Part shown: one piece after another, positions 9,525-47,320 of the stretch
How positions within the stretch are numbered: position 1 is the stretch's first letter
Layout of the letters: each line of letters opens with the position of its first letter
Assembly (NCBI GenBank): GCA_051294905.1
Contig: CM119372.1
Coordinates: 26,846,001 to 26,910,000, forward strand
Reading direction: 5' to 3'
DNA: 64,000 nucleotides
From: Botryllus schlosseri
Taxonomy: Eukaryota
Position numbers and translations under genes: made by a program
Notes under the pieces: model-generated
The model's database searches: none
What the model saw: the letters and a program-made list of their open reading frames with translations, nothing else
Told to the model about the DNA's origin: nothing

Positions 9525-11129
9525 GTAATTATATATCAATCACATTGAGCATTAAGTACGTTGCATCATGATTGCTTGTAAGCTCTCGTCACTCAAGGAA
9601 TGAGGTAGTTGGAGTAGCCAACATTACCAATTATTGCGTCACATGATAGACTATGCTCGGAGACGTCGTGTCCAGACTCAATAGAATATCGGATCAACAT
9701 TACTGTTGTGATTATTACATCACAAAATCATGTCATTCCAAGTGCTCGTAAAACCGTTGCACAAGCTTGTATTTGATCCTACACAGCGTTCAATAGTTCA
9801 CGTTCACACATAACAAAAGCGATCATATTCCGTGAACAGCGAACAACGTACGCTTCTTGAAGATTGCACGATAAAATGTATAAAACACCAAAGTATGGAA
9901 GTATGGAAATGTCGTTCCATACCATAGATTAAAATCTTCCATTCCATACCATACTTGCATTGTTCCATATTCCATACCGAAATATCGATCCATACCATAC
10001 CATACTTCCATACCATACCATACCATACCATGCCCTGGTGAAAGCTACCAAGGTCTTAGGTTTAGATATATCGTCTGCTATCGGCGCAACAAAGCATTCA
10101 TTCTATATTATGTGAGGATACTTCTTACGCAATGACGAGTAAAGCTAACACTTCTGACGTAATAATGAGCAGTGACGATTGGAAGTCAGACGTTTGTGCT
10201 ATCACTAACCTCAACCTGGTATAATATCTCTTCCTTGTTCACGAATGTTCAGTTTATGTCATAGTTCTTGTACGTACAGATTAAAAGTAATCGTTCTTCC
10301 ACTAAGAAATCGATTAAATATTGGAAGTAGTCGATTACGATTACGATTACTTCGGATTTTTCTCGAATGTAATCGATTGTGATTACGATTACTTGAAAAT
10401 GCTGTAATCGTCGTAATCGATTACGATTACTAATCGCGATTATCCCATGTCTGGTCGAAGTATAACAAAAATCCAAATTTTGAGTGTGTCATTGTTGTAT
10501 TTTCTATTGAATTTACTATATCAAGACACCCGATGTACAATCCGATGCAGTGAACAGATACAAGGATGTCGAGACGACCATAGTAACGGTATCTCAATCT
10601 AGTAGCTCAATCAGGCATCCCCATTAGATCATGGATTGGGTCTTTTTCTGGCTTTTTATTGTAAAGACGCTCCGAGCACAGCAACGTATATGGTCGGAGA
10701 ATCTCATAAATCTGCGACGCTTCGTAACTTGTTACTGCACTGCCATGAATGAAGCTGGAGCCTCCACCGTCAATGGGTGTGATACGCTAGTTTGCCAACA
10801 TATGGTAGGACGGTGATAGATAACAGATAACTAAACTCGGGCAATTGGACCGTGATGTTGAGGTGTAGCCGAAGGTGACCTTTTACTTGTCACCCCATCA
10901 GAACCGGAAACAAAACAGGGACATGACGCAGTTGATGACCTTTTTCGTTTCTATTTGTAGTCGTATTCTTGCCATGTCTTCGTTATCGATGATCATTTTA
11001 TACCATACCGATATTCCTTATTTTGATTCTTGAGATGCCAACTTATAGCACGGCCCACTTTTTGTAAGACACTGCTTTTGCAGATCGGAGGACGAGTAGG
11101 AGCCAATGTAAACCTCCAACACCTAGGAA

Positions 11130-11600
11130 GGCATTCCCACCATAGAGAAATGAACTCATTTGGAAGTGATGTTCACGTTTACAAATTAGAATTGCCAACA
11201 GCCATTCACATTGCGATTGTTAAGTAGCGTGTCAGCACTGCAGGTAAAATGTAGACTCAGCGCGCAACGTAATGTTGCAGGTGACAAATTTGAGAATTGA
11301 GAAGTAAAGTTGATCAAATTATATCAGTTAACAAATTTCACCGGCCCTGAGGTTTATTAGCCCGGTTTGTTGGAACTGCAATTGGCTGGCTGCCAGTAAG
11401 ACTTTTGAGGTATTGCTATCCTTACAGAAGCTGTTACACGATCTGCATGGAAATGCGTTTGACTTCCATGTATAAGTACAGACACCTCTCTGCGTCTGTA
11501 TTTGTTGGTGGCGATCGTGATGGAACTCTTCCATGCGACGGTTAATTACATCGACAACGAGGTAGTAGGTAGACTTTATTGTCAAGCCAATCTTATGAAA
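11130..11600 (-). mobile_element. Decayed hAT transposase C-terminal fragment (ZMYM1-like/hATC dimerisation region)
   Basis: Minus-strand YYLVVDVINRRMEEF, then FSNLS..LRCALSLHFTCSA and VNG/LLAILICKRE, resembling hAT motifs (IxxxxxRF; FPNLxxLLxIALTLPVTxAxxERSFS; RLNGLALLxIE). Frameshifted. Confidence 0.45.
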
Positions 11601-11713
11601 TCAACCTCAGCCTGAAGTTTGAACGAGATCTCAGCAGGTCTAAGAAGTAATAGCTGATAATTCAAAACCTCACACGGATTCAGAGAAAGTTCTTATTCCT
11701 GCGAGCAATAAAA

Positions 11714-11830
11714 TTGCAAAAAAATGTCTGGGAAGAATTGAAAACGATCCCCATGTCAAATGATACCATCCGTAGACGTATTTGTAACATGTCCGCAGAG
11801 ATAAAAGAAAACTTAATTTATTCTTGGAAG
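11714..11830 (+). mobile_element. Buster/Charlie (ZBED5/SCAND3-like) hAT transposase fragment
   Basis: EELKTIPMSNDTIRRRICNMSAEIKENLI matches the characteristic LKxIPLSNxTVxRRIxxMSxDIK segment. It lies ~200 bp from the element 3' end, so the element is internally deleted. Confidence 0.8.
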
Positions 11831-13362
11831 CAGAGAAAAGCCTACTTGAGTACTCCGAAATGGCAGAAGTACTTCGTCAGTGACCTCCTATGTAAGACTG
11901 TGGTTGTGCTATACGCATTCTGGTAGTTTGCCTCTGCCGTAAGCCAAAAGAGTTCAGAACCACTGTGCCAGTGTGCCACGAACTATTTTCATTTTCAAAG
12001 TGTGCCACGAGGTCAAAAAGGTTGGGAACCACTGGCTTATGACATCAGAAAAAGAATGTAATTTACAAGCAGCGTACAATAATATGAACAATGGACATTG
12101 TACGATATTGCACACCTGGTCAACATATTCTGAAGGATAAACTCGCCTATTTATCGTGATAGCTAGTCATCGGTCCATTTTAATGCGGATCTGGTACACC
12201 CCGGTACACCCCATCCGAGTGGTACACCCTTTCATAATTTTGGTACATCCTTGGGTGTATAATACACCCGGTTGAAGAGCCCTGATCTAGGGTTACCATA
12301 TATTGGTAATCTGAAAAGAGGACACTTTTTAAAAATCTTCAGGCTTACAATACCGGAGTGAAATGCGAAAAAATTGGTAAATTTATTGCCAGTTTGTAAT
12401 TGTTTGACGAAATAAAAAAGGTTATTTTGCCGACCCAACTCCAGAAATGCACACCGTCATTTAATTTTACGTTGGTTGACTAAAAAAATGAAGGCCACAT
12501 CATGCCACAATGTTTAAGTACATATTGACGTTTTAAACGTCGCTGAATGTATCAACTGGGGCAATCAAATTATATAATAATCCCATAAAATCAATATCTT
12601 CCATCGCTTTGCCGACAATTTCGATTTAGACTTGCATGAGAATATAAGCTTGACGGTCGAGGCCAGACCGGACAATGTATTCGGCGTCTGAGTGTTGCTA
12701 CGTTGATATTGAGCTGGGTGTAAACGGGTTTCTATACTTGTTACGGATATTACCCCATTAACAACTTATACAGCAGTAGCCGACACCCCAATAGCCCGGA
12801 TTTGGTTTTTATGATCCAGTAGACATATGAAGTCAAGATTGACCCCGTATTCTTGCTAGATTTTTGGCATCAGACAACGATATCTATCTCATTGATTGGT
12901 TGAATAAGCATCATTCGCTTACTACATGTGGTATATTTAGCTCTTGATGCTGTGTAATTGCGGATCAAGCTCACAGCAGACAGTCACCAAATATTCACAA
13001 ACGGATAGCTGGACATTTTGAGCAAACTTTTATGACAACGCATGTAAAATTTTTGAGATTGTTAAGGTGCATGCTCGTTTAGTGTTGATTTTCTTATGCT
13101 GCCAGCGCGATACATAGAGTGGCCCGCAGTTGAAATGCAATAAATTTCGACCAAAGATGTTATATTGAAGTGAAAATTGTTATATAGGAAAAAGGTTTAC
13201 AATGCAGAACCTACCAAGGCACGTTTGTGAACGTGAACCTCTAAATTTCCGAAGTTCACACACAGAACGCGAACGTGAACGTTCACACCATCCCTACCCA
13301 ATAACATATGGTGTTTTGTATCGATACGTTGCACGCATTAAAAATATTCTCATTTATGTCAG

Positions 13363-13509
13363 CATCCGCAACATTGGCTGAAGGTGAGCATGTCCATCAA
13401 AAATTTACCAACAGCCCGGTAAACGTCCTGGTCGGAGATGAGATCCATGGGAATAAAATCGTCAATATCACTACTAGTGCTGAATGCGAAGCAACCACCA
13501 AAAACCAAG
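13363..13509 (+). CDS. Candidate symmetric phase-1 exon (49 codons), probable N-terminal exon of the NLR gene
   Basis: Acceptor ttatgtcag|, donor ccaag|gtgagt, length 147 bp, open frame (A)SATLAEGEHVHQKFTNSPVNVLVGDEIHGNKIVNITTSAECEATTKNQ. A paralogous exon follows at 13872. Confidence 0.6.
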
Positions 13510-13871
13510 GTGAGTATAACACCGTTTTATCATGTATGTAAGTATGTCACACTGGTTAAGAACGAACGAAATTTCACCCGTCATGTCATTGTATGTGACC
13601 GACGAAATCGTTGAAAGTCGGACCGTTGGCAGTGGAACGATTTTAGACCAGTCTCGAAATGCTATGTCAGCATTTCGCTTTGCGAGATATCCAGCTGAAC
13701 ATAATATACTCCGCGCCCGGGAAATGTTATGTGAACGACTTCATGCAGGCGCCAGTTCAGTGATTTCTATCCAGCCCCAAAACGACTATTACGCAAGTTC
13801 GGTGCAATTTGGAGTATAGGCATTATCGATACATATACCTTCATTGCATGTAATAACTTCATGTGTCTTAG

Positions 13872-14015
13872 TATCGGCAGCATTGGCTCAAGGTGAAAAT
13901 GTGAATCAAACTGTCGAAGAAATCTCCATTGATGCCCCTGCTGGTGATCACGTCCTTGGGAGCAAGCTAGTATATAACATTACAATTGCCGGTGGCGTAG
14001 CAAGTCATTTTGATA
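13872..14015 (+). pseudogene. Paralogous phase-1 exon truncated by a MITE insertion
   Basis: Acceptor gtgtcttag|. Frame (V)SAALAQGENVNQTVEEISIDAPAGDHVLGSKLVYNITIAGG aligns with the 13363 exon and runs directly into caggggtcgccaac at 14016. Confidence 0.55.
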
Positions 14016-14330
14016 CAGGGGTCGCCAACTTCATACGGGTCGTGGGCCACCTTTCAAATTTCCCAGAGGCTGCGGGCGGCAAGAATGCAATATCGAGACA
14101 GCATAGGCCACACTTTTAGCAACCACGTTTACATCTTTACTTCAGTACATCGCGCGCTATATAACATGGACGAAGGGCATAACTCCAACAAAAGAAGTAT
14201 TTTATTAACGAAGTACAAATTCAACAACATATAACATGATCATAAATTTCATTTTATTTTTAACTATGTGCCACTCAACCCTACCTGACAAACGCATTTT
14301 ATGCGACTAATGAATCGATTCGCGCTAACG
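14016..14330 (+). mobile_element. hAT-type MITE, 5' part (family shared with 29326-29610)
   Basis: caggggtcgccaacttcatacgggtcgtgggccac...atatcgagaca...aaccacgttt... is colinear with 29326 onward. No 3' end found. Confidence 0.7.
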
Positions 14331-14918
14331 ATACACGGTACTAGCTGAACGACTATCTCGTTGTCAAGCTTGATCTTTGGCGGAAGCCCTAAGCCGTGTA
14401 CTAAGCGACTCGAACTTTGCCGTGACTGAGCTATTTCACGACTAGGCAATATGCCCATTAACCAGGCAAAAATAGCTTATATTAGGCCTTTTTCAAAGTT
14501 TATTTTTGGCAATTTCGGCATCGGGATGAATTCAAATTCATAGACTCGAATTAACCATGTAAACTGCTTCAATTTGCTCTTACTTATGAAACGGAAGTCA
14601 CAAAACATGCAGTATCCACAATGTGCCAACAAACAGCAAGATTTAAATCCAAATTGAAAACGATGTTGGAGACCAAATTCACCCGATACAAAACCGAGTG
14701 GTTCTGTAATATCTATTCTCAATAGTCGATTGACTATGCCTGCAAAATTACAGGCATTCATCACAGGTCACAATTCAAAAGGGTTTCTGACACGTTGGGA
14801 TCGCAGTCTTCACTACCCAACCAAATGGTTAGAAATCATGAGTGTCTTTGATAAATCAATATAACATGAAAAACTATCCACCTGGAAATGAAAAACTAGG
14901 AAAGAACGAAATATATAT

Positions 14919-15203
14919 ATAGCTTTCAATACAACATCCATTGCAGTAAAATATTTATTCAACGCGAAGACTTTTCGGGTGCCTCTTTTCAAGAGTTAAT
15001 TGCATACTGAAGGGATTTAAACAGACTGAGAAGCAAAAACCAAAATGGCAAAGTATGACGCAACCATCAGAAATTACATACCATGAAGTCCGCAGTGTAA
15101 CAATGGCAACAATAACAAACTTTGAACTCTTGAAAAGAGGCACCCGGAAAGTCTTCGCGTTGAATAAATATTTTACTGCAATGGATGTTGTATTGAAAGC
15201 TAT
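14919..15203. repeat. Near-perfect inverted repeat: 79-bp arms, 127-bp spacer
   Basis: 14919-14997 and 15125-15203 are reverse complements with one mismatch. The left arm starts in an (AT)5 run. Confidence 0.92.
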
Positions 15204-16499
15204 CTTCAAGGTCTGTACCACGAACCAACTATTTATATATATATATATATATTTACCTATTAGGCTACTTTGGGAGACATTTGCACTTATTTTTGTAGCA
15301 GTTGGGGGACGAAAAAAATTGGGAGACAATTTTGTGTCCCCCTAATTCTTGGCGACATTTTTCCCTCGGTTGCTATCGTCTGTTAAGCAAATCCGTTTGG
15401 GACCACGCTTATTAGTCCCTCATTTGTCCCTTCCAAAAGAAATCAAGTCATGAAGTAGCAGGAATTTCGAGTTACAATGGCGACATTTTGACCCCTGTAT
15501 AAACCCCGTATTTTGAAAAGTGGCATTAAGTCGACAATCAATAGGGGGGATTTTCTTCCACTTTTCGCGTGTATAAAATGACACCGCTTTGCATACATGA
15601 TAGTTTTTGTTTAGGATTTACTCAGTTTAGACCATTCCAGTATATATAGGGATTTTAAGACTTTATACACTGTTTTAAAAAATGACGACATAAAAATTGC
15701 TGACTACCATTGTGATGACTCGACATAAGTTCTAGTTGCGATCTTGGTAGACACCGCGGATCGTACGATTTTAATGACGACTCCTATTATTTGGGCCCTG
15801 ATTAGCTCTTGGCAAAGGCGAAAGGGCACTATACCATCGTTAAATTTTGTTGTTTAACACTCGTGATACATATTGTGAAAAAGAATCCCTGCTTTACCTT
15901 AATACAACTCCATCAAATATATGTATTGGTTATAGCATGATAAATATTCTGTAGTATTCCCCGCACCCAATATATCGAGCTGATAGGTCGTTGATTTGCT
16001 TGTGTCAAGACAGCTTTAAGATGCTCTGTCAGTTGCGAGCGTAAGGCATATACCTTTTGTCAGTTATTCTCAACCTTTCATGTCTTTGCGGACCCCTTTT
16101 GGACCGTCGCGAGCCTCAGCGAACCCCCGACTTTTATTTCTAATTTAGCTCAAATTATTGTTTCCGCTCAAGCCAGACAATGTGCAATGCGGTACTAAAG
16201 ATGCATTGCGACATATTGAACAGAGAAGAGAATGGTAAAACTACCAAGCACGGTTATTATTAATCTATAGCATCCATCTCGGCCTAATCGTGAAGGTGAT
16301 TGGCTCCCATTTTTTCTCTTCAGCTGTGTTTCAGTTGCTTGTCCTGGCAATTCAGTGTTCGCTTTCCTGGCATTCGCAAATCCATGTCTTTGTCGGAGGA
16401 GTAGCCCAGATAAACCAAGGAGGGTTGTTGCTCTAACCGTGCAAATAAGAAAGGATTCACCTTACTAATGCTCAAGAGAGAGAAAGAGAGAAAGCAAAC

Positions 16500-16632
16500 A
16501 AACTTATTTTTATCTTAACCATCGGATACCGTGGATACCAGTTTTCGAATCTTAGGTCTGACCCGCCCGGGGATTGAACCAACGATTTACAGATCAAAAA
16601 GCCGCACGCATCACTGCTACGCTATCTCCCCC
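16500..16632 (-). mobile_element. tRNA-derived SINE fragment, family 2
   Basis: Reverse complement reads gatagcgtagcagtg...ggttcaatcccc...ggtcagacctaaga...aactggtatcca. It has a B-box-like GGTTCAATCC and is homologous to 43030-43190. Confidence 0.65.
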
Positions 16633-16669
16633 ATTCCTGCCACACCCAGATATTCCTACCCCGCTTGGG

Positions 16670-17070
16670 GGAGGGCGAGCTCGAATGGTGCCAAAATTAT
16701 TTCGTGAATGAACACTAATTATTCGCTATTTATTTGAAAATTTTCGTAACTTTTTAATTTTTCTCGCGCTGTACGCGATTTCATGTAGATAAATGTTTGT
16801 TTATTAGGCACCCTTCCTCCACAAAAAATGCGCATCATCTGTAGACGTAGGCATCTAAGCGAGCGTTGGCCATTACCACGCCACGATGTAAAAAGACATA
16901 TAAAGTGTGGGTCAACATGGGTCTCAGAGAAGTGAGCCAAAAAGATCGTCAGCAAGAAAACATTAGCCGAAAAGGATTTCCCTTATGTTGACCGTAAACT
17001 TCGATATAAAAATGTCTTGATCCGGGTACCTAAATTGCTGGCGCCGAATATTCATGTCGTGTCAATCTGG
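16670..17070 (+). repeat. Dispersed repeat, copy also at ~58040-58440 (end fragment near 61550)
   Basis: gagctcgaa...ccaaaattatttcgtgaat...ggccattacc.cgccacga...gccgaaaagga...cctaaat..ctggcg.cgaat is colinear between the two loci. Confidence 0.75.
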
Positions 17071-19411
17071 ACCAGATGAATATAAAATGTGACCTAATAT
17101 GGCCGCGGGTGTAATCATCCCTCTCCACACCCACAATAATTTCGTTGCTAGAGAGAGGAGAACAGCAACGACTAGCATAATAACAATATATCTCGTCGTA
17201 ATTTTCAAATTATGTGCAAGGTCCAACGGACCATGTGACCTCAATCAGCTTTCCATACCTTCGTAAGTTTGTAGCAATTCCCTAAATGATTGTAATCACC
17301 CTATCATCTTACCAGAAACGCATATCTGGGTTGAAAACGCGTGATATCAATCAACCGTAATTTTAACATTAAATTCAACTGACGTAGCTCATGTCATCCG
17401 CTCATACCATGCAGCAGTGTTGCTTGAAAAATCAAACTCGTTTATTCGTCATCACGTACAAGGATAAAATGACTCTGCAAAGCTAACATAAACAAATAAT
17501 GATGATCAGGCTGAAATGTGGCGATATAGGTTCGGAAAGCAGCCAACTGCAAAGTTGACTTGTTTTGTCATTTCATAACGTCACAATGCTGCGGCAAGAG
17601 AGTGTCCATTCAAACACCTATCACTGGCTATCAGACATATTGTGGTATCAGTTGTAAATACCCAGAGTGTCGGTTTCGCACAATGCGCTGGTTACAACGC
17701 TCGGTATAATCTAGGCTTACAACCGATAATCTTACATTATATGCGTTGCACTAACTAAAACATGGGTACAGATATTCTATTTTCCTTATATTAACACACG
17801 GTAAGAAGCAGTCAGATTCGGCTATCAATTACGGCCCCGTCCATTCAAGCCAAGGCAACAATACATATATTGACATTGACAGTCTGATGGTTAAGTGATC
17901 AGACCGTCACGTCATCATCGTTGATCATTATGGCAGACTAGGGAGACCGCAGGCACTTTGATCAGAATTGCTTGACGGCAAATTCATTAAAGTGTCTTCC
18001 CAGCTATCTTGACGTCTCGATTGTTTGCAGTGGCTGAAAAACAAGGCAGCGATCTAATGCCAAATTGTTAGCTCCATGCACAGTACATACGTTTGAAGAT
18101 TATACACAACTCCAGTAAATTTCAAAACAAAAATGCAACATGATAGGTTGCTTCATCAAGATGGAGCTTTATCATAGGCCACACACTTGATTTTGAATCA
18201 ATGAAACGAAAAGGCAGATGTTATCGTAACTATGTGCTCACTCACACAGCGTATATATACGATTTATCAATATTTAGAAAGTATCTAGCTAGTTGAATTA
18301 TTTGAAATTAATCGGGAAACAATATAAAGTTAACGTTACGCGATAAAAGTAGGCCTATTCCCAGATATATTGAGCGTGAAGTCAACATTTTACTAATTGA
18401 GTTCTGTGAACACCTTTTCAAGGACGATTCTAAATCCGTTGCTACTCACATAGACGTTTAATAATCTGTCAGAAAGCACGTTACGCAGTGAAAATCTACC
18501 ACGGCACGAATTGAATTAGTGAGGGAAACATCACAGGACGCAGCCTCCGTTTGGCGACTGTTCTGTCCAGTACTTACCCTTCCGCGTGACGTAGTTAACG
18601 AAATATAATACTTACAACAGAAGGGAAATGCATTCTATACTGAATACTCACTTTTTGTCATGGAAAAGGAGTCAGCGTGGCGATCCAAATTTGTACGCTA
18701 TTGTACGCAGAATTCAGCAGCTATGTAGAATACTCTTCAATACACAGAACGAATCGTTCGATGAAAACACTGATTGGGAAGTAACTCCATCACGCATGTT
18801 TGCGTCTTTAACTTTTCATATAAGATTCGTGTTAAGGATTCATGCTGATATACTTGTCATGAAACTTTAGGGCCATGAGGTGCTAATACATCTTCTGCAT
18901 CATTCTACATCATCTGCTAGTCCATCGTCCAAAGTAACGTCCATTTACAATAACCTGCTAATACGCTGAAACTAATCTTTCAATCACTCGGTGACAGCGG
19001 ACATGAGACCTTACCAGTTGATGGCACGCAATTGGTCGCGCGTACGTATACAATACAAAAGTCATCGACCTAATTCAACATTGTGAATTGTGCCTATCTC
19101 TGTAAGAAAGGCGGCATGTTAAATTTTTTGTGATAAAAGTAGGCTATTCCTAAGCTACTGATCGATCTGTATATTCTGCGAATTCGGTAGCCTTTGGGAG
19201 ACAAAAACCGACTTTTCAGACGCCAATACCGGGCCAACCCCGTGCCCAAGCCGTTGAATCGGATATCATCGCGTTCAGTTCGACGAGAGGAAAACGGGGA
19301 TAACTCTGTCGAACCCCTAAGACCAGCGGTTGTCGATCGGTATTTCGATCTATGTTCTGATACCGACCGATCGAAAAACCAACTGCGTAACCCGTATTGG
19401 CGTACCATCAC

Positions 19412-20065
19412 GGGTTTTTGGAAGAAAACTTTTTTCTACGCGTCTCAGCCCCATTTCCCGGGTATCGTTGGAATTGTAATCGAATTACGCGTCTGCCGGT
19501 ACCCAATTTATCCGGCTACGATATTCGGTTGGCGAGAAATCGGTGATTAAAAAAACTGTGAAAAAAGCGCTATACACTGTTTTTTGAAGGCCGATCCCGA
19601 GTCGGCTGAAAGTTCGATACGATCGTATCGGGTATCGGTCTACGCGGGGCCCGAAGACGAACGCAGCGGTACCTCGTATGGCCCAGTGGTGTGAACGACC
19701 GAGACGGAACCTCGAAAAGCCCGCCTATGAAAAACGTGAACTTCTCGGATGATCCACCGATCCAGGATAATCCGAGGATTATAATCGAAAAACTCACATA
19801 ACTCCGCTTCTACTGGTCGGAATTGAGTCAAATTTGGTTTGCATCGTCTTTGAAGACAGCTAAACAATTTCATGGGGTTGGCAGAAAAATTTGAATTCTT
19901 TTTCAAAATTTCACCTAATAAATTAAAATTTTTAATTTGATCTGCGGAGTCCTTTACTTGTTAGAATTGAACCAACTTTGGTGTGCAGTGTTCTTAGGGT
20001 AACCTGACAATTTAATAAGTCAATGGCTGGAATCCGAAATTTTACTTTATTTTTGAACAGCCCTA
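19412..20065. mobile_element. Fold-back hAT-type MITE, same family as 47806-48390; right arm clean, left arm garbled
   Basis: 19740-20065 matches the centre plus one arm of the 47806 element and ends tttttgaacagcccta. 19412-19740 shows only patchy similarity to the expected arm. Confidence 0.7.
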
Positions 20066-20083
20066 GTGTACGTACGTACAGTC

Positions 20084-20650
20084 CATTTATGATCAGTGCG
20101 GGACTTGAAGCACAGGCCTGCAGGCATAGGCGGAGCCTGGAGCCTATTCAATCATATTACGTCGCATGCCATGCAATACCTCGTTTACAATGATGATGAC
20201 CCCCATTAAACGCCAATGTAATCAAGGAGGTTCGCAATTCGAAATGAAGATAGGTTGGGATTAGTTTATACAGGGTTTGGCGCTTTGGCCATGTTGATAA
20301 TTGTAATTATAATTGATCGGGCAGGGTTATTACCAAAGGAAGTCATATGGGCGAATCGAAACCGTTAGTTGATTTGGCGGAGACAAATACTTTGTAAGTG
20401 GCCGGGATGGTAATATCTAGAGATATCATAATGAAATGCTATTGTCTCACGTACATTTCTACTTGTAAATGTACAGTACGAGTGCACAAGCACATACGTA
20501 CATTTATGATTAGTGCGGGATTTGAAGCACAGGCCTGCAGACATAGGTGGAGCCTGGAGCCTAATAAATCACATAATGTCGCATGCAATACCTCGTTTAC
20601 AATGATGATTATCTCATCATGCGCCAAGGTAATTAAGGAGGTTCGAAACC
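20084..20650. repeat. Direct repeat pair (~150 bp, offset 417 bp)
   Basis: catttatgat.agtgcggga.ttgaagcacaggcctgcag.catagg.ggagcctggagccta...aaggaggttcg at 20084 and 20501. Confidence 0.85.
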
Positions 20651-20868
20651 GCAACTGGCTGGTATCGCAACTGTGGATCATATCACTACGTTTTCTCGCG
20701 ACGCTCTCACTAATTGAGTGGCCTTGAATTCGAGATCTAGACGTGTCTCCGAGTACAGGCGAATGTTGGGTTAGCTTTGCTGGATTTCAGGCGGTGCGTT
20801 CTCTTCGGTATCAAGCAGAATATTCATACACGCATCTGTTTAGAATTAGGTTTGACTAGTCTGACTAT

Positions 20869-20959
20869 ATGATGGATATACTAACCGACTCTGACTGCGA
20901 CAACGAAGCATTTGATCCTAAGCCAATAAAGCTCGGAAGATATGTCTCTTATGACAAAG
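20869..20959 (+). CDS. Candidate first coding exon of the gene inside the (TA)n element
   Basis: ATG start, MMDILTDSDCDNEAFDPKPIKLGRYVSYDK, phase-1 donor aaag|gtacgt, compatible with the phase-1 exon at 23692. Confidence 0.4.
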
Positions 20960-21972
20960 GTACGTACCATGTAATTCCGTATGATTACATGTATTTCAAT
21001 ATATCAGTGGTTCCTAATTATATATTAAACAAGTGTAAATAGTCTAGAGAGTATTAAAGGACAACAGAAAGGTGGTATAACAATCTTTCGATTAAATTAT
21101 GATCGCAAATTTACATTTGACAAATACATCAAGGTACGGCTCGTTCGTTGGGCTTTCTGAGACATAGGGACTATACGCCATGTGTTCGGTCATCGTAATT
21201 TATGTAAAATGTGTGTCATGTGCGTATACAATTATGCATAGTGTTGGTATGTTTCTTCCCTGTACCATCATGAATGATTCAGTTTACTGATATGATCATA
21301 CAGCTTCTTATACGAGTAGCATAATATTAGTTGTTTCGCTTGAAGCAGGCCTACAGTAGGCCTATATCTATGTTGAAGTCGAAACTGGAAGTATTATCTC
21401 TACTCTTTACTCAACTATCAAATGTCTATACCACATTTCAGTTAATTTACTATTCGAACAGAGCAATGATACAAAGTTTTAAATTATTGATTCGAGCCCG
21501 AAATAATTCCAATGCTGACGCCAAGTTTTGAAAACGAACCATTCATCATTATGTCTATTATCAATTGAGTCAATTTGATGAGGAGTAATGTTTCGCAATG
21601 TTTCGATGATCGATGATAGCCTATGGTATATTTCATCAAATAGCGTTGTTATCCACGTACAATGTACATTGTGCAATATGTTTACGGTTTGTTGACAAGG
21701 ATATTACGTGATGTGTTCGCTCCCTTATTACTACCGTGTACCATGAGCCAGGGGTGTCAAACTCGAATTGCTTCGCCGGTCGGATTCAGACCTTCAAATC
21801 GCTCGCGGGGCGGACCAGTTACATCAATCAAAAATGTTACCTCAAAATCAACGCCTCAGTTGAGCACTTGAATACTCAATTATACAGCCCATGTATGATG
21901 CGGTTATACTCTATAAAACCCGTTATTCGCAAACAATATAATTTTTTCAAGTCCGTAATAGAACCTAGTGCA

Positions 21973-23187
21973 ACCTTTGACGACTTTGTTATTGTCGATC
22001 CGTCTGCAACAGTAATTAAAGGCAAAGTCGCTATTGCTCTTCGTTGATTTTAACTATGTTTCATATCGATTTGGGGAACATCATTTCGTATGGTATATTT
22101 TGATGCTGTCATCTTACCAAGTTTCAAGACTATGACTTTATGACTAGCGCAGTAATTTCGCTGTCAAAGTCGAGCATCTAGTAAATCAGCCCGCGCCAAT
22201 ATATGGTCGACTTTGATAACGTAGGCCTACTTACTACTTTAATTATTGGGTCACAGCCTTAAATCTTCATACAATGTTAGATGCCATCATGAAGATATAC
22301 AATCCGAAGTTTTGCCATATAGGAAACAATCAAAATGTACACATACCAATACTGTTTTTCGTGAAAAATCAGTTATGCGGTAGGCTGAAGGTCAGGTGAT
22401 TGCATCTTACACTGAACCAATTTTTGAGGGTGTGACTCGGTGATCAGGATAGTAATTTCGTTATGATAGTCGAGTATATCAAGTACATCGCTGACCTGCC
22501 ATCTAGGCTACCGCATGATAGATTTTTCACAAAAGCCGAAATTGCTATAATGCTATATGTAGGTTTTGAATGTGTTTTATCCCGCGGGGGATAACAAATA
22601 TCGTATTGTATATTCTGATGGAGACATCTAGCACTGTATCGAGATTTAAGGCTGTGACTCAATTATTACGGTAGCAATTTCGTGATTAAAGTCGCGTATG
22701 TCAGGGTGCGCGCTGATTTGGCATTCAGCCTGCCGCATAGCAGATTTTACTGCAAAAGCCAGTATTGGTATGTGTACAATTTAAATATATTTCATACGGC
22801 TATGGATAATCAAATTCATATTGTATATCTTGATGAAGGAATCTAATACTTAACCAAGTTTCAAGGGTGTGACTCTATAATTACAGTAGTAAGTACGTTA
22901 TCAAATTCGCGTATCCAGGGTCTGCGACTCTGCGTGCGCTGGTCGACATTATATCGGCGCGCGCTAATTTACTAGATACTCGACTTCGACAGCGAAATTA
23001 CTATGCTAGTCATATAGCCATAGTCTTGAAAATTGGTACAGCGCAAGATGACAGCATCAAAATATACCATACGAAATTATGTCACTCAAATCGATATGGA
23101 ACATAGTTAAAATCAACGAAGAGCAATAGCGACTTTGCCTTTAATTACTGTTGCAGACGGATCGACAATAACAAAGTCGTCAAAGGT
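21973..23187. mobile_element. MITE with ~240-bp TIRs, ends cctttg...caaagg (piggyBac-like ends; TTAA TSD not preserved)
   Basis: 21973-22210 and 22945-23187 are reverse complements (acctttgacgactttgttattgtcgatccgtctgcaacag...). Interior contains the ~220-bp unit seen at 6.7-7.7 kb. Confidence 0.8.
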
Positions 23188-23691
23188 ATCTGGGCCTGAC
23201 AGTCACGTGGTTTTCCGAGTGTCCACACCACCTTTGAGTTCACGCTGGTCCAACAATCTCCAGTAATATAATGGCAAATACGGTGAGGTGTGCGCACTAT
23301 AATGTGAATTATCTCGCAGTCATTTCTCGGTCATCATCAGCGAATAAATTTTCGAAGATTGATTACCTTGTAAGGAAGGTATCATGTTATGGGCGATTGC
23401 ACGCTACTCGAGAATTATTTAATTTGACACCTTCGAGTGAACTCAACCAACATCTCAAAATGATACGATACATTTATATGATTGTAAAATTGTCTACAGC
23501 ATCACATACATCTGCATGTAGCGTACCAGTTACTCACTGTTAATGTTAAATACAGTATGGGCACTCCTTTTACCAAAACTATCTATTCAAATGCGACGCA
23601 TCAGTCACTCTTGAATCTAAAATGACAGACAACACGATACATGATACATGCAACACGATAGTCTAACCTACGCAAATTCGTTTCATCACAG

Positions 23692-23904
23692 CTAATCGGA
23701 ACAAGCATCTTTCAGATACTGTTGATAATGAAGATGATGTCAATGCCCGGAAGAGGCTTGGATCTTCGCTACATATCATCAGTCAAAATGTGATGCAGAA
23801 TGATAGAGGTGGCTCATGTGAAACACCTCCTATGAATAAAAGACTAAAATCACTCGATCGTCAATATAACGACGGAGAGGCTGGACCCAGTGGACATGAA
23901 GAGG
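23692..23904 (+). CDS. Symmetric phase-1 exon (71 codons), low-complexity charged peptide
   Basis: Acceptor tttcatcacag|, donor gagg|gtgagt, 213 bp, open frame (A)NRNKHLSDTVDNEDDVNARKRL...EAGPSGHEE. Splices in frame to 24159. Confidence 0.7.
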
Positions 23905-24158
23905 GTGAGTTTACAATATTTTGCCACATTTCATTTTCAACATAAGTGTTCAACCTAATATTCTCATATTCAACAGTACCAAAATATATTGATGACAATT
24001 TATTAATTCGTAGTGGTATTACTATTCCAATACATTTATCGTTCTAGCATATAGGTACAATGTACATTGTACATGGTCGGTAGGATTAGTGAAACGTTAC
24101 ACACAGAACTCCTCTATCCCGCAGGAAATGAATAAATACCTAAGGCATCATTTTTCAG

Positions 24159-24790
24159 ATTATGAAATGGACCCAGATGCGCACGAGGAACTAGACGAAG
24201 ACTTTGAGGAGTCATGTATCAGTGAAGCTTCGGAATATGAGCCACAGTCTTCATCTTCGACTACGGACAGTTTCAGTAGCGATGATGGCAGGGAAGAAGA
24301 GAAAACCCGGAAACCCGCAACATCTCAGCAAAAGTCATCCACTTCAGACTGTTGCGACACCAATATCAACAGCAATAATGAGGCAGCCATGGATATCTCA
24401 TGTGGCTCACAGTCATCAACGTGGGCTCCAGATGGTTCAGATTGTGAGTGGACAGACCTGGAAACCTCAACGCCAAAGAAGAAAGCTGTGACTTCAAGGA
24501 TAAAGAAAAAGCGGGCAAGGCCGAAGAAAAAACCGGCAAGGCCATGCCTTTACTGCAAGAAGTTCCAAACGAAACTTAACCGACATTTAATAAATAAGCA
24601 TCCTGAGGAAGATGAAGTCAAAGAAGCTCTGGCTTTAAGTGGAAAATTACGGCTCCGCAAATTCGATTTATTAAGGAAGCAAGCAATCATGCAACACAAC
24701 AAAAAAATGCTACAACTGCAGATGCCATTGGTCTGTGAAAGAAAAAGCCGTCTTTCCCAATTGAAAATTTGCCAGAATTGCCAGGGTTAA
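24159..24790 (+). CDS. Acidic region + basic NLS-like tract + C2H2-like zinc finger; N-terminal part of a zinc-finger/tyrosine-recombinase-type element protein, truncated
   Basis: Acceptor tttttcag| in frame with ORF 24089-24790. Contains KKKRARPKKK and PCLYCKKFQTKLNRHLINKHPEEDEVKEAL...FDLLRKQA...LVCERK...CQNCQG, then a stop. The architecture is recognised from memory of uncharacterised animal proteins with a downstream integrase-like core. Confidence 0.7.
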
Positions 24791-25445
24791 ACTTGGTTTC
24801 TCGTTTCAAGAGCGTCAAGAGCGCCATAGATGGACTCGTGAAGAAACAGCTGAAATCCTAAACAGATTCAAGGATGTAATTTATGAGGAAGGAGACAGCA
24901 ACAAAGGCAGCTTGCCAGGTAGAGTGGAATGGGTTTGTTCGTTTGTGGTATTCATGGTGTTTGTCGACTACTATGGTCATTCCCCCCATAATTGCCGACT
25001 TTTAGCAGGGCCCACTTCTGGGCTTTTATAAGACGCCGCTTACAGGGATGAGATGGCGAGGGGGAATGTAAATTGATGCTGTGTGTTCGCGTAATATACA
25101 TTTATTAGTTATTGATCATGGCAGTGAAGATATCGATTTCTTTGGATCCTACTTCCGAGCTAGGCCAACCTTCGATGTTATATGATTTCTTCTGACCGTC
25201 GTCGTTGAAATACCATTGAACCTTACAATAGTTATATGCAGCTAGTTGCCCAAATTATAGATTTAATGAAATATGCTCGTGTCTTTTTAGGGTACAAAGA
25301 AATTGGAGAATTTGTGGAAAGCAGTGACATCCTGAAAGGTTTACCGGACATGCAGAGGATAAAAATGGTTAAAACCAAAATCTTCAATGAGAGAAAAAGA
25401 TGCCGCTCTGCACTGCATAAGGGGATGTCACAAATGCACGAATAG
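24789..25445 (+). pseudogene. C-terminal SANT/Myb-like exons of the same gene (24789-24918 and 25291-25445)
   Basis: RHRWTREETAEILNRFKDVI...GSLP, donor ccag|gtagag, acceptor tttttag|, phase-matched to GYKEIGEFVESSDILKG...VKTKIFNERKR. Out of frame with the upstream zinc-finger ORF. Confidence 0.65.
24945..25075 (-). mobile_element. tRNA-derived SINE family 1, 3' fragment in an intron
   Basis: gtggtattcatggtgtttgtcgactactatggtca...gccgacttttagcagggcccacttctgggcttttataag matches the other family-1 copies. Confidence 0.8.
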
Positions 25446-26333
25446 TCATGGACTATGACATCAGACTTTCAGCACGTAGCGTCAGTGATCTCTAGCACTG
25501 ACGACTGTAGATTACGATTGAGCAATTTCGTTTAGTACCTGGTGGCAATTTTAAATGTACAATTCGTTTCATGATTTTTGTTGCATTCTCTTCACAACAT
25601 TTTGTTGCGAATGTGTTTTGATAAATTGGTTTCGATCGCATGCTTCGAACTATTTCATTTCTTGGTGTGATTTAGCAGGTTGACATTGGTAGAATCGAAC
25701 GATTTTTTGGCCGCTTTCAGCATTGGCTGGAGGATGCACCCATGGCTCACCATGGGGCGTAGCCTTATTGCTCGAGGTCCGAATTACTTAACAGTGAACA
25801 AGTTGGCGTATGGCTTAAAACAAATGGAAGTTAGCAATTATCAAGTTACCAAGATTATCACGAATCAAGATTCAATGTGATCTGCTGTAGGGTTTTTAAG
25901 AGAAACATGAATTTGGAGCGAAGTTTATACGGTAACTCCTTACAATTTGACGCGGCTATAACATGGCGAGAGTCTGAGATCGGTTTAGAGACATGTTAAA
26001 GTGGTCTTTATTCGGTAATATTGGATCAAAAAGTGTACAGTGCCTTAGTGGAAAAATTGCCTCATACCTGCTAGTAGACTGTATGGTCCATGAGACGTTA
26101 TACTTCCGAGGGATATAAGGGCTGCTTATATTAAACCGAATATATTTATTACCTAATTAGAACTTGGATCTGCTATCGCGACAGAGTAGCCACGGCTGGC
26201 CAACGAATGTCATAGTGATTTGGATACTAGCCGTAAAAAACTGGTGATCTAATCTGCAGCATGGCCAACTGTAGCTTCTTATAAAGACACATGTTCCGTA
26301 TTTTCACAGCAGTTTTCAAACGCAAATATGTGC

Positions 26334-26608
26334 GTGGTGAAATGGCGTGGTCATTGGTATAATCCACAGCTGCAACACCAATGGGTTGTTGGTTCGAGTC
26401 CGGCTGAGGACGACACGAGAATTCCTACCCAAGTGTTGGAGGTTTATCTAGGCTCGTCGTCATCCTGTGATCCGCGTAAGCGGTGATTTATAAAAGCCTA
26501 GGAGTGGGCTGTGCTAAAAGTCGGTGAATACGGAATCAAAAAATGAATATAGGCATACTCTAAAACTACGAAATTAGTCAAAACACCATGAATAAAAAAC
26601 AAACAAAC
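26334..26608 (+). mobile_element. tRNA-derived SINE family 1, full length (~275 bp)
   Basis: A-box-like tggcgtggtcattgg (26343), B-box ggttcgagtcc (26391), body ggaggtttatctaggc...aagcggtg...aaaagcctag, tail caccatgaata...(caaa)n. Confidence 0.85.
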
Positions 26609-27126
26609 GGCGAATTATATATCGCGATCATCGATATCGTACAAGGATGACGTCGTGGATTTCAAATAGTGACGTCAAAAGTGATTGTCATTGGTAAATG
26701 ACTCTTTTGACGAAACTGGTTCCCGAACCTTGTCATATAATACGACGTCAATGTCCACCTTAGTTCAGTAACAGCAATGGTCATGGTCTGGTAATTCAAA
26801 ATGGCGAATTGTCTCCCTAAGTAACAAATGTCCACTAAAGTGGTCTATTAGATATTGAAAAAGTTGGGAAAAATTAGGGCGACCGCAGTTGGAGGACATT
26901 TCGTGTATATTCTAAACGCTGCGATATAAACCGCAAATCACCAGTGACAAAGCGCGGAATCGATATTCCAAAACCAATCGAGTTATTTTGAGACGCCTAG
27001 CTTGTCTCCTTCTGTTGGCGATAACTGTCGCCCAACTGCTTCAAAACAGGACTGTCCACCAAAGTAGTCTAATAGGTAAATATATATATATATATATATA
27101 TATAAATGTATGTATGGCACGTATAG

Positions 27127-27585
27127 CAGGATTGTAACCAAGTCCCAAGGTTCCGAGTCACAAGTCAATCTCATTTTATTAGTTTTGATTCGAGTCTAGT
27201 CGAGTCATATTCAATTCACCACCGTGTCCAGTCCGAGTCCAATTCAACTACATGTAGTTGAGGGTCGAGTCCGAGTCATAGTATTTTGACTCGAGTCCGA
27301 GACCAAGTCATTATGTTCACGTTTCAGTTTTCAGTTCAATCCGGTTCAACCCACTTTTATTAACTCTGCTCGAGTGATAAAGAATAGCTCGCATTCATAA
27401 TTTAGTAATTTTCCTCAGTTTTAACATTTTCTCGCCCTATTTTCCAAGTATCAGGACTGATAGACGAAATACCAATAATGTGGTAACTTTATTATTCTTC
27501 GAAGTTACAATGAACTGTCTGTCTGTCTTGGCCGTCCTTGTCTCGAGTCCTGTGACTTAACTCGAGTCATGTACAATGACTCGCT
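27127..27585. mobile_element. GAGTC/GACTC-rich hAT-type MITE, 3'-truncated (family of 49717-50255)
   Basis: Starts caggattgtaaccaagtc and is colinear with the 49717 copy. Confidence 0.8.
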
Positions 27586-47054: not shown

Positions 47055-47320
47055 CTGTTTGTTTTGTGGTATTCGTGGTATTTGTCGACTACTATGGTCA
47101 TTTACACCAGGCCGATATTCTTCATTATTTTCCGTAACAGCCGACTTATTGCACGGCCCTCCTCTAGGCTTTTTGTGAGACACCGTTTATGCGGATGAGG
47201 AGGCGAGGAGGAGCCTAGGTAAACCTCCAACTCTTGGGTATCGGAATTCTGAAGTCGATTATACCGCGGATTATACCACTGCGCTATACCGTGGATTATA
47301 CCACTGCGCTATATCGCCAC
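47055..47320 (-). mobile_element. tRNA-derived SINE family 1 with a rearranged head
   Basis: Body and tail match family 1. The B-box region is replaced by a tandem repeat of gattataccactgcgctata. Confidence 0.8.

Follow-up and report, generated by a model that had tools for sequence, protein, structure and literature searches.

A TA-repeat-inserted, internally deleted transposon of Botryllus schlosseri and its probable zinc-finger tyrosine recombinase

We analysed a window of 64 kb from the genome of Botryllus schlosseri (contig CM119372.1, positions 26,846,001 to 26,910,000) and found that positions 15252-27080 of this window are an 11.8-kb mobile element that has been recently active and inserts into TA-repeat DNA. 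The window copy is a non-autonomous, internally deleted derivative of a 13.6-kb DNA transposon, and its gene is broken. It is likely that the transposon's own enzyme is a zinc-finger tyrosine recombinase (YR).

Ends, family and TA-repeat insertion

Both ends of the element were read directly: (TA)9 is followed by TTTACCTATTAGGCTACTTTGG at 15252-15273, and CCAAAGTAGTCTAATAGGTAAA at 27059-27080 is followed by (TA)12. The two terminal inverted repeats (TIRs) are 22 bp long and differ by a single mismatch (G/A, position 13). An earlier reading made from the letters alone (the sequence-only reading) had proposed a TIR element in a (TA)n microsatellite, with further inverted similarity inside its ends; both proposals were borne out, the latter by GCAGTTGGG(G/C)GAC, which lies at about +45 from both ends of the window element.

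Each 200-bp terminus was searched against the 495.5-Mb genome and gave at least 40 scored matches (74-78 candidates) with 94-100% identity on many contigs. As the sequence-only reading had expected, the termini recurred in pairs beside TA repeats. They were always paired, at distances of 8.1, 9.3, 9.5, 10.0, 10.2, 11.8, 13-14 and 19-21 kb (8.1-20.7 kb overall), and 56 of 59 adjoined alternating TA stretches 6 nt or longer, compared with 88 of 51,969 background positions in the window (0.17%). The sequence was also present in RNA and DNA runs from several studies. The flanks of the loci were unrelated to each other, except in one case: the copies at C2:20681242 and C2:20764595, 83 kb apart, had the same flanks on both sides, and are therefore a segmental duplication including the element rather than two insertions.

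The lengths of the TA runs varied and were unequal between left and right (2-38 nt), which did not fit a fixed-length duplication. The right run was 20-22 nt long in 12 of 23 independent insertions versus 4 of 23 on the left, suggesting that a donor sequence of (TA)~10 forms part of the element at one of its ends. This asymmetry suggests an element-borne donor, as in the model for Cryptons (PMC9977147), rather than cut-and-paste transposition, and the right TA run of the window copy may itself be carried by the element, given the family mode of 20-21 nt. Left TA runs were as short as 5-7 nt beside unique sequence that was not duplicated on the right; for instance, left flanks ending in CTCTTGATATA and CACAGATATATA at the element boundary had no duplicate on the right side. 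Hence, 8-10-bp duplications of the target site (TSDs) like those made by hAT or Mutator elements are excluded.

Ten full copies were compared with the window copy. All of them kept ~5 kb on the left side (15252-20260) and ~1.1 kb on the right (25942-27080), and their middle varied through internal deletions (22275/24788 or 22611/24912) or a different 2-kb segment; no open frame of more than 155 codons was found in these ten. The zinc-finger open reading frame (ORF) at 24089-24790 was found in four copies only. The features of the element outside its gene are as follows.

15234-15251, unstranded: left flanking (TA)9 run, target or crossover sequence; read directly, in the arrangement that recurs at 56 of 59 family termini
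15252-15273, plus strand: left TIR, conserved in every copy examined
15252-15500, plus strand: left subterminal cluster of TTGGGNGACA-type motifs; sites at 15270-15281 and 15319-15330 in motif scans
15252-20260, unstranded: conserved left arm, common to every copy and subfamily in blastn against the ten full copies
21973-23187, unstranded: internal inverted-repeat structure with 143-nt arms (97% complementary) plus further arm pairs
25942-27080, unstranded: conserved right arm, common to all copies, with inverted TTGGGNGACA-type motifs and a TIR-like near-copy
27059-27080, minus strand: right TIR (reverse complement TTTACCTATTAGACTACTTTGG), from the letters and an inverted-repeat search
27081-27104, unstranded: right flanking (TA)12 run

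The left arm was 98-99% identical within the main subfamily and 80-93% identical in a second subfamily, and contained neither an ORF of more than 120 amino acids nor a significant Pfam match. Motif scans of the left cluster also revealed an inverted copy of the TTGGGNGACA-type motif at ~15335 and variants near 15349 and 15477, and these motifs are putative recombinase-binding sites. Ten of the 13 GGRGACA matches in the window fell within the element; enrichment of the stricter pattern TGG[GC]NGAC was modest, and in most species it was seen at a single end only. The TIR-like near-copy lies ~228 bp inward of the right end. The internal inverted-repeat structure is probably a nested foldback or miniature inverted-repeat transposable element (MITE), and the deletion breakpoints 22275 and 22611 of shorter family copies lie inside it. 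An Rfam scan of the element found no RNA family.

Two further repeats adjoin the insertion. Directly to its left is a 79-nt inverted repeat (14919-14997 and 15125-15203; 99% complementary, 127-nt loop), which may be a small foldback or MITE. The right flank at 27122-27583 is an abundant ~460-bp repeat with 6,872 candidate copies at 83-87% identity, and the (TA)n target may be part of the edge of this repeat.

The recombinase gene and its deletion in the window copy

A 13.6-kb copy was identified at C8:20560537-20574127, and its right part was reconstructed from three overlapping natural loci. In this copy, the zinc-finger frame is open for 707 codons, and with two RNA-supported introns and one short inferred intron the whole gene can be read without interruption as four exons and 854 codons. 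This length is close to that of an 864-amino-acid homologue from the tunicate Styela. The gene product combines two zinc fingers with a tyrosine-recombinase core and ends in a small C-terminal module.

The DNA of the truncated first coding exon of the window copy (24089-24786) is 97.5% identical to that of the C8 copy. In the alignment of the two, 1,826 bp of the full-length copy were replaced by a single T in the window (breakpoint 24786/24788); the lost segment comprises the remainder of exon 1, including every catalytic box, the whole of intron 1 and exon 2, and part of intron 2. The zinc-finger and C-terminal parts therefore adjoin in the window copy because of the deletion and not through splicing. 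In this respect the sequence-only reading, which had described a plus-strand spliced gene containing both parts, has to be corrected; two introns and a poly(A) site of the gene were supported by RNA.

The same 1,826-bp deletion was found in two more copies, at C8:8.32 Mb and C2:35.95 Mb, with 99.3-99.6% identity. The identical deletion in three copies at separate loci indicates that a recombinase-less derivative has been mobilised in trans. The window copy lacks every catalytic residue and can thus move only with a recombinase supplied in trans, and the single intact C8 copy is the most likely source. A whole-genome search with the Styela homologue, whose best match in the genome was 50% identical, detected no further intact gene; the other matches were fragments or contained stop codons. 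Two RNA reads crossed exactly the window-type deletion junction, and the window copy is still transcribed and spliced. The features of its gene are listed below.

20930-20959, plus strand: 3' end of an RNA-supported upstream exon with the donor AAG/GTACGT (consensus of loose-end reads), present in the window and in the copies L044-L046
24089-24786, plus strand: truncated first coding exon, codons 1-233 of the full gene (ORF list and comparison with the C8 copy)
24787, plus strand: deletion junction
24813-24918, plus strand: exon with the first half of the conserved C-terminal module (RQERHRWTREETAEILNRFKDVIYEEGDSNKGSLPG), from tblastn of homologue tails; in frame with the next exon
24919-25290, plus strand: GT..AG intron, 372 nt long; six raw reads of RNA-seq run X24, with 4 start points, support it
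25291-25640, plus strand: last exon, with the second half of the C-terminal module (YKEIGEFVESSDILKGLPDMQRIKMVKTKIFNERKR...) and the 3' untranslated region; RNA depth 90-130x

The truncated exon encodes an acidic, Ser-rich N-terminus, a basic stretch, a C2H2-like finger (CLYCKKFQTKLNRHLINKH), and the beginning of the next finger, and homologues match only this exon of the window protein. The C-terminal module mapped to ~24813-24918 and 25291-25442 using the homologue tails, followed by a stop codon at 25443-25445; the acceptor of the exon at 24813 was inferred, and its donor was supported by RNA. The poly(A) site at window ~25640 (L064:3078) was defined by 43 reads with poly(A) tails. Furthermore, the upstream exon ending at 20959 was spliced to the last exon in 137 reads, the pattern expected of the abundant shorter derivatives. 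In the C8 gene, a GT..AG intron of 186 nt lies just before the end of the long ORF, as indicated by one contig of run X4 (99.6% identical). Separately, a 40-bp piece of the window intron, 24941-24981 (L064:2379-2419), had divergent flanks and reached, in contig sets from three runs, a depth of ~10,000-19,000. This piece derives from some extremely abundant repeat or transcript, and one consensus flanking it recurs near window position 47101.

The sequence-only reading had suggested that a YR core would lie between the zinc-finger and C-terminal peptides of full-length homologues, and the C8 copy contains one with a YR fold. Its first exon, of 682 codons, carries ARRGGEP, GKG, MRHRAST, and MGHS...NVY (MGHSAEMNKNVYQ); in the frame, a C2H2-like finger (C-x2-C-x12-H-x4-H) and a second finger (C-x2-C...H-x4-C) precede these recombinase motifs. 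Alignment of 39 cores indicated that R493 (ARRGGE), K541 (GKG, beta hairpin), H642 (MGHS), and Y651 (NVYQ) are invariant and that R616 (MRHRAST) is at least 90% conserved, i.e. five of the six canonical catalytic residues are present. The AlphaFold2 (AF2) model of the core, with a predicted local distance difference test score (pLDDT) of 88.1 and a predicted template modelling score (pTM) of 0.79, had two domains, helical core-binding and catalytic. In a Foldseek search of the PDB, all significant matches were YRs: XerA (E=1.6e-4), XerH, IntI, XerD, Cre, lambda Int, Flp, and also the Tn1549 Int bound to circular-intermediate DNA. The alignments covered both domains (~390-440 of 443 residues).

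DUF3504 had no match at E<=0.1 in any of 39 family members, Pfam gave nothing on the window ORFs alone, and the zinc-finger region alone gave nothing against the protein database. PDB sequence searches with the protein (phmmer) and the profile (hmmsearch) returned no recombinase. The C-terminal module matched no Pfam family, and its fold matches were non-significant (E>=2) and mostly homeodomains, so that a helix-turn-helix DNA-binding domain remains a lead for this module. A search of 5.8 billion proteins with the core yielded more than 139 homologues, nearly all unannotated. The best were proteins of the tunicate Styela clava (50-54% identity, E=1e-142), and the next (35-46%) came from scallop, clam, abalone, periwinkle, oyster, sea cucumber, urchin, crinoid, and brittle star. 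One homologue, P0046, was labelled as a metagenome-assembled genome of 'Candidatus Thiodiazotropha endolucinida' and most probably stems from DNA of the host clam that was binned together with its symbiont. Among 1.84 billion cluster representatives, a profile search matched 7,103 at E<=1e-3 and 1,431 at E<=1e-30. Within the Botryllus genome, two decayed and more divergent recombinase remnants with several stop codons (36-53% protein identity, 84% DNA identity over 400 bp) were found at C3:1377510-1378696 and C3:1649112-1650560; they provide evidence that related families were active there in the past.

Relatives in other phyla and the enzyme that moves the family

The YR gene, inverted ends, and (TA)n flanks also occurred together in elements of 12-17 kb from sea cucumber, periwinkle, and clam. 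In the sea cucumber Apostichopus, (TA)n runs 16.8 kb apart enclose the YR ORF, and CATTAGGRGACAA is common to both inverted ends; the 30-kb locus has 14 GGRGACA motifs, every one of them inside the element, with inverted clusters (GGAGACAAT) at both ends. In the periwinkle Littorina, a 56-nt inverted repeat (89%; TIR length about 47-56 bp) adjoins (TA)n on either side of the YR ORF and bounds a 15.2-kb element. In the clam Mya, (TA)n is followed by TTTAGAYCARTG at both ends, 12.4 kb apart, with a TIR of ~12 bp, and the right end has CTTTGGGAGAC and TGTCGCC motifs resembling those of the window element. The right end of the abalone element, the one end that was resolved there, adjoins (TA)11 and has GACCTTTGGGCGACA. 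These elements have related end motifs, and the only protein they share is 34-40% identical, which points to that protein as the end-binding factor. No DDE gene was present in their called gene sets.

Additional features were observed around the foreign genes. Immediately upstream of the abalone recombinase ORF (L062:12483-15453) are ~28 tandem units, mostly ~97 bp apart, each with ATTAGACCTTTGGGYAACA, the same motif as at the right end of that element. In scallop, Holothuria, and Mya (L061:5478-6607, L069:5794-8863, L070:1-9328), the recombinase gene has a SET-domain gene immediately upstream, and in Styela, a crinoid, Haliotis rufescens, and one Holothuria gene model (P0006, P0058, P0062, P0079), SET domain and recombinase form a single fused protein. 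In Mya, a C48 peptidase was weakly matched near the recombinase gene.

The remainder of the window element was searched for another enzyme. No transposase family and no Pfam match at or near the gathering threshold was found in 23 frames of at least 65 codons, covering the other 8.8 kb upstream of the gene; the scan took in 23 of the 29 open frames of at least 62 codons and left out six of 62-65 codons, and short exons could escape it. By tblastn and tblastx, this 8.8 kb contained neither SET-domain or other N-terminal parts of the homologues nor similarity to any other part of the homologous proteins.

We infer that the recombinase moves the family, and propose a mechanism drawn by analogy with Tn916/Tn1549 and the Crypton model. 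The YR would bind the 22-bp TIRs and the TTGGGNGACA-type subterminal motifs, probably via its zinc fingers and/or the C-terminal helical module. The element would then be excised as a circle, in which the inverted ends would flank a TA-repeat spacer (right TIR-(TA)n-left TIR) in a junction like that of lox/FRT or Tn916/Tn1549. This circle would reintegrate by strand exchange between its TA spacer and any genomic (TA)n tract, which would offer both crossover homology and easily deformed DNA. The outcome would be unequal TA runs on both sides and no true TSD. On the whole, we think that transposition of the TIR family is probably YR-driven.

Several observations weigh against this view. The genome contains only one intact YR gene, and its catalytic exon had no reads in the raw RNA run and was covered only by low-depth contigs of other runs. 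The canonical His-II position is Thr or Ala in the 39 cores, with a nearly invariant H590 nearby. Pfam Phage_integrase (PF00589) matched at E=0.02-0.04 (14-15 bits versus a cut-off of 27.1), and 11 of the 39 homologues matched it weakly (best E=1.7e-4). No circular junction or precise excision was observed in the read data, which covered the gene region. The empty (TA)n site that the sequence-only reading had led us to look for did not appear: when it was sought with the right flank in the assembly, only the filled site matched at 100%. A spacer of ~20 bp in the circle would hold the TIR arms too far apart for a classical 6-8-bp core site, so the details would then have to differ from such a site. 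Among nine foreign loci, four (urchin, scallop, Holothuria, and brittle star) had no clear boundaries in scans for GGRGACA, inverted repeats and TA flanks, and the fifth (abalone) only a right end. Moreover, TIRs with subterminal repeats are a hallmark of DDE elements, DDE families that target (TA)n exist (Ginger2-like, PMC10871703; MuTAnT Mutator-like elements (MULEs), PMC4486113), and the two 19-21-kb copies at C7:11783108-11802023 and C6:4807735-4828463, outside the inspected set, might hold another gene.

These last points lead to the strongest alternative, in which a DDE cut-and-paste transposase (Ginger2-, MULE-, or Tc1/mariner-like, or of an unknown kind), encoded elsewhere or in the long copies, moves the TIR family, and the YR travels along as cargo or helps as an accessory resolvase, comparable to the situation in MarCry-1_FO or Tec1/Tec2. 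A TA-rich target, like inverted ends with subterminal repeats, is typical of DDE elements: Ginger2 prefers RTATAY (PMC2836005), a Ginger2-like integrase drives (AT)n insertion of nimaviruses (PMC10871703), MuTAnT MULEs target TA microsatellites (PMC4486113), and MarCry-1_FO is a Crypton YR inside a mariner with a TA TSD. However, no DDE domain was found in the scanned frames of the full-length element or in the called genes of the foreign elements, and the termini lack the TGTNR pattern and the 50-180-bp TIRs of Ginger elements. Exact TSDs of 8-10 bp, as made by hAT or MULE elements, are incompatible with left TA runs as short as 5-7 nt beside unique sequence, and a one-sided modal TA run of 20-21 nt is not expected of cut-and-paste. 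The association of the YR gene with inverted ends and (TA)n flanks in three phyla, at 34-40% identity, is also hard to explain for cargo. We therefore consider a DDE-driven family unlikely. A resemblance of the end ...CTAATAGGTAAA to the nimavirus Ginger2 TIR (...CTAATAGGTAACG) was noted and rejected, since the viral motif is at the inner end of its TIR and Ginger termini are TGTNR.

It is much less probable still that the zinc-finger/YR gene is a host or domesticated gene that happens to sit in, or was picked up by, a large repeat unrelated to it. Some homologues carry annotations of host genes with several isoforms or have a fused SET domain, and Crypton YRs have repeatedly been domesticated in animals (PMC3212892). 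Nevertheless, every match in the Botryllus genome was at the same internal position of family copies or was a decayed fragment, with no stand-alone locus, and the independent deletion derivatives (22275/24788, 22611/24912, and 24786/24788) all come from the gene-bearing form. The catalytic residues are invariant in the 39 homologues, unlike in domesticated DUF3504 proteins, and 7,103 cluster representatives are as expected of a mobile-element protein; rather than a single-copy host gene, the homologues are mobile-element genes present in many copies, in keeping with the sequence-only reading. Self-complementary TA repeats inflate nearby inverted-repeat calls, but the dozens of copies on many contigs with unrelated flanks, found in RNA and DNA runs of several studies, reduce to almost nil the probability that the inverted ends and TA flanks are chance or an assembly artefact.

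Of all classes of eukaryotic transposons, the YR DNA transposons are, to our knowledge, understood the least; we know of their activity being directly seen only in Chlamydomonas, and their ends are usually cryptic. The family described here has sharp ends, a simple and abundant target, dozens of young copies, derivatives moved in trans, and one apparently intact gene that is spliced and polyadenylated, and it has relatives of the same architecture in three phyla. It makes end recognition by a eukaryotic YR transposon, its choice of a microsatellite, and movement through a circle accessible to direct tests. A recombinase that places large DNA into (TA)n without double-strand breaks could interest builders of genome-engineering tools, and the family would help explain in part why TA microsatellites in the genomes of marine invertebrates are unstable and vary in length. 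More tentatively, the 7,103 clusters, nearly all of them without annotation, could represent a large and essentially undescribed clade of animal YR transposons with inverted ends, TTGGGNGACA-type arrays, and lox-like (TA)n integration; we find this possible, though doubtful. If true, eukaryotes would possess an equivalent of Tn916-type integrative elements, one copy of which, apparently intact and expressed, lies in the Botryllus genome.

Comparison with known systems

The first report of CryptonV is said to be that of Kapitonov and Jurka (2012, Repbase Reports 12:2034). According to a statement by Kojima in a citing paper, CryptonV is a YR-encoding lineage of cnidarians described in Repbase Reports in 2012, and some of its families insert specifically in microsatellites (PMC8869645). 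As far as this statement goes, it is like the window family in being a YR-encoding DNA transposon that inserts in microsatellites; it differs in that CryptonV was first reported from cnidarians, whereas the nearest homologues of the window family are from tunicates, with others in echinoderms and molluscs. Judged from the citing paper, CryptonV is the closest named kind. The term 'uncharacterised' used in the sequence-only reading stands only in part, since CryptonV, a group of YR transposons specific for microsatellites, had already been named in Repbase (cited in PMC8869645).

General accounts of Cryptons include Goodwin 2003 and Kojima and Jurka 2011 (PMC3212892). As in Cryptons, the YR is the sole recognisable enzyme of the window family, reverse transcriptase is absent, the same short sequence is found on both sides, and non-autonomous derivatives outnumber autonomous copies; one relative (Mya, weak match) shares the C48 peptidase. 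Insertion is explained in the same way as for Cryptons, which include the active CryptonF-1_cRei (PMC9977147): an element-borne sequence recombines with a similar target. Cryptons F, S, A, and I are described without TIRs and with only 4-6-bp direct repeats, and animal CryptonA and CryptonI as having no terminal repeats (PMC3212892, PMC8969392, PMC13465315). In contrast, the window family and its relatives carry TIRs of 22-56 bp and subterminal motif arrays. The window family further differs from Cryptons in its size of 12-17 kb, multi-exon gene, N-terminal zinc fingers, and C-terminal module, and from CryptonA, whose YRs match DUF3504, in lacking such a match.

The integrases of Tn916/Tn1549 and Cre, Flp, and Xer have the same two-domain YR fold and were the top structural matches, and the proposed circle junction would resemble that of Tn916/Tn1549 in placing inverted ends around a crossover region. 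Tn916-type elements prefer AT-rich, deformable targets. Unlike the YR of the window family, these enzymes are bacterial or from phages, and no sequence similarity to it was detected in the PDB searches with phmmer and hmmsearch. Nimavirus YRs with C2H2 and SAM-like domains insert in (TAACC)n (Kawato et al. 2023, PMC10871703) and are functional analogues with microsatellite-specific integration; they differ in belonging to viral genomes of >200 kb and in their targets, (TAACC)n or 28S ribosomal DNA (PMC10871703).

The (AT)n-targeting nimaviruses instead use a Ginger2-like DDE integrase (PMC10871703). Ginger2/TDD and MuTAnT elements are also TIR-bounded and prefer TATA-like or (TA)n targets, but encode DDE transposases, of which none was found in the window family. 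Ginger2/TDD elements have an integrase-like DDE enzyme with an H2C2 finger, TGTNR termini, 4-5-bp TSDs, and TIRs of 50-300 bp (PMC2836005); the window family had no rve/integrase match, its termini start with TTTACC, and its TIRs are 22 bp long. The 9-10-bp TSDs typical of MULEs are excluded by the short left TA runs of the window family, in which no MULE domain was found either. The 2-bp TA duplication of Tc1/mariner elements would be indistinguishable from a TA-run flank, and no such transposase was found in the scanned frames of the element. Taken together, we rate the window family as Crypton-class and microsatellite-specific, yet with TIRs, motif arrays, a size of 12-17 kb, and a multi-exon gene, and as occurring in deuterostomes and molluscs.

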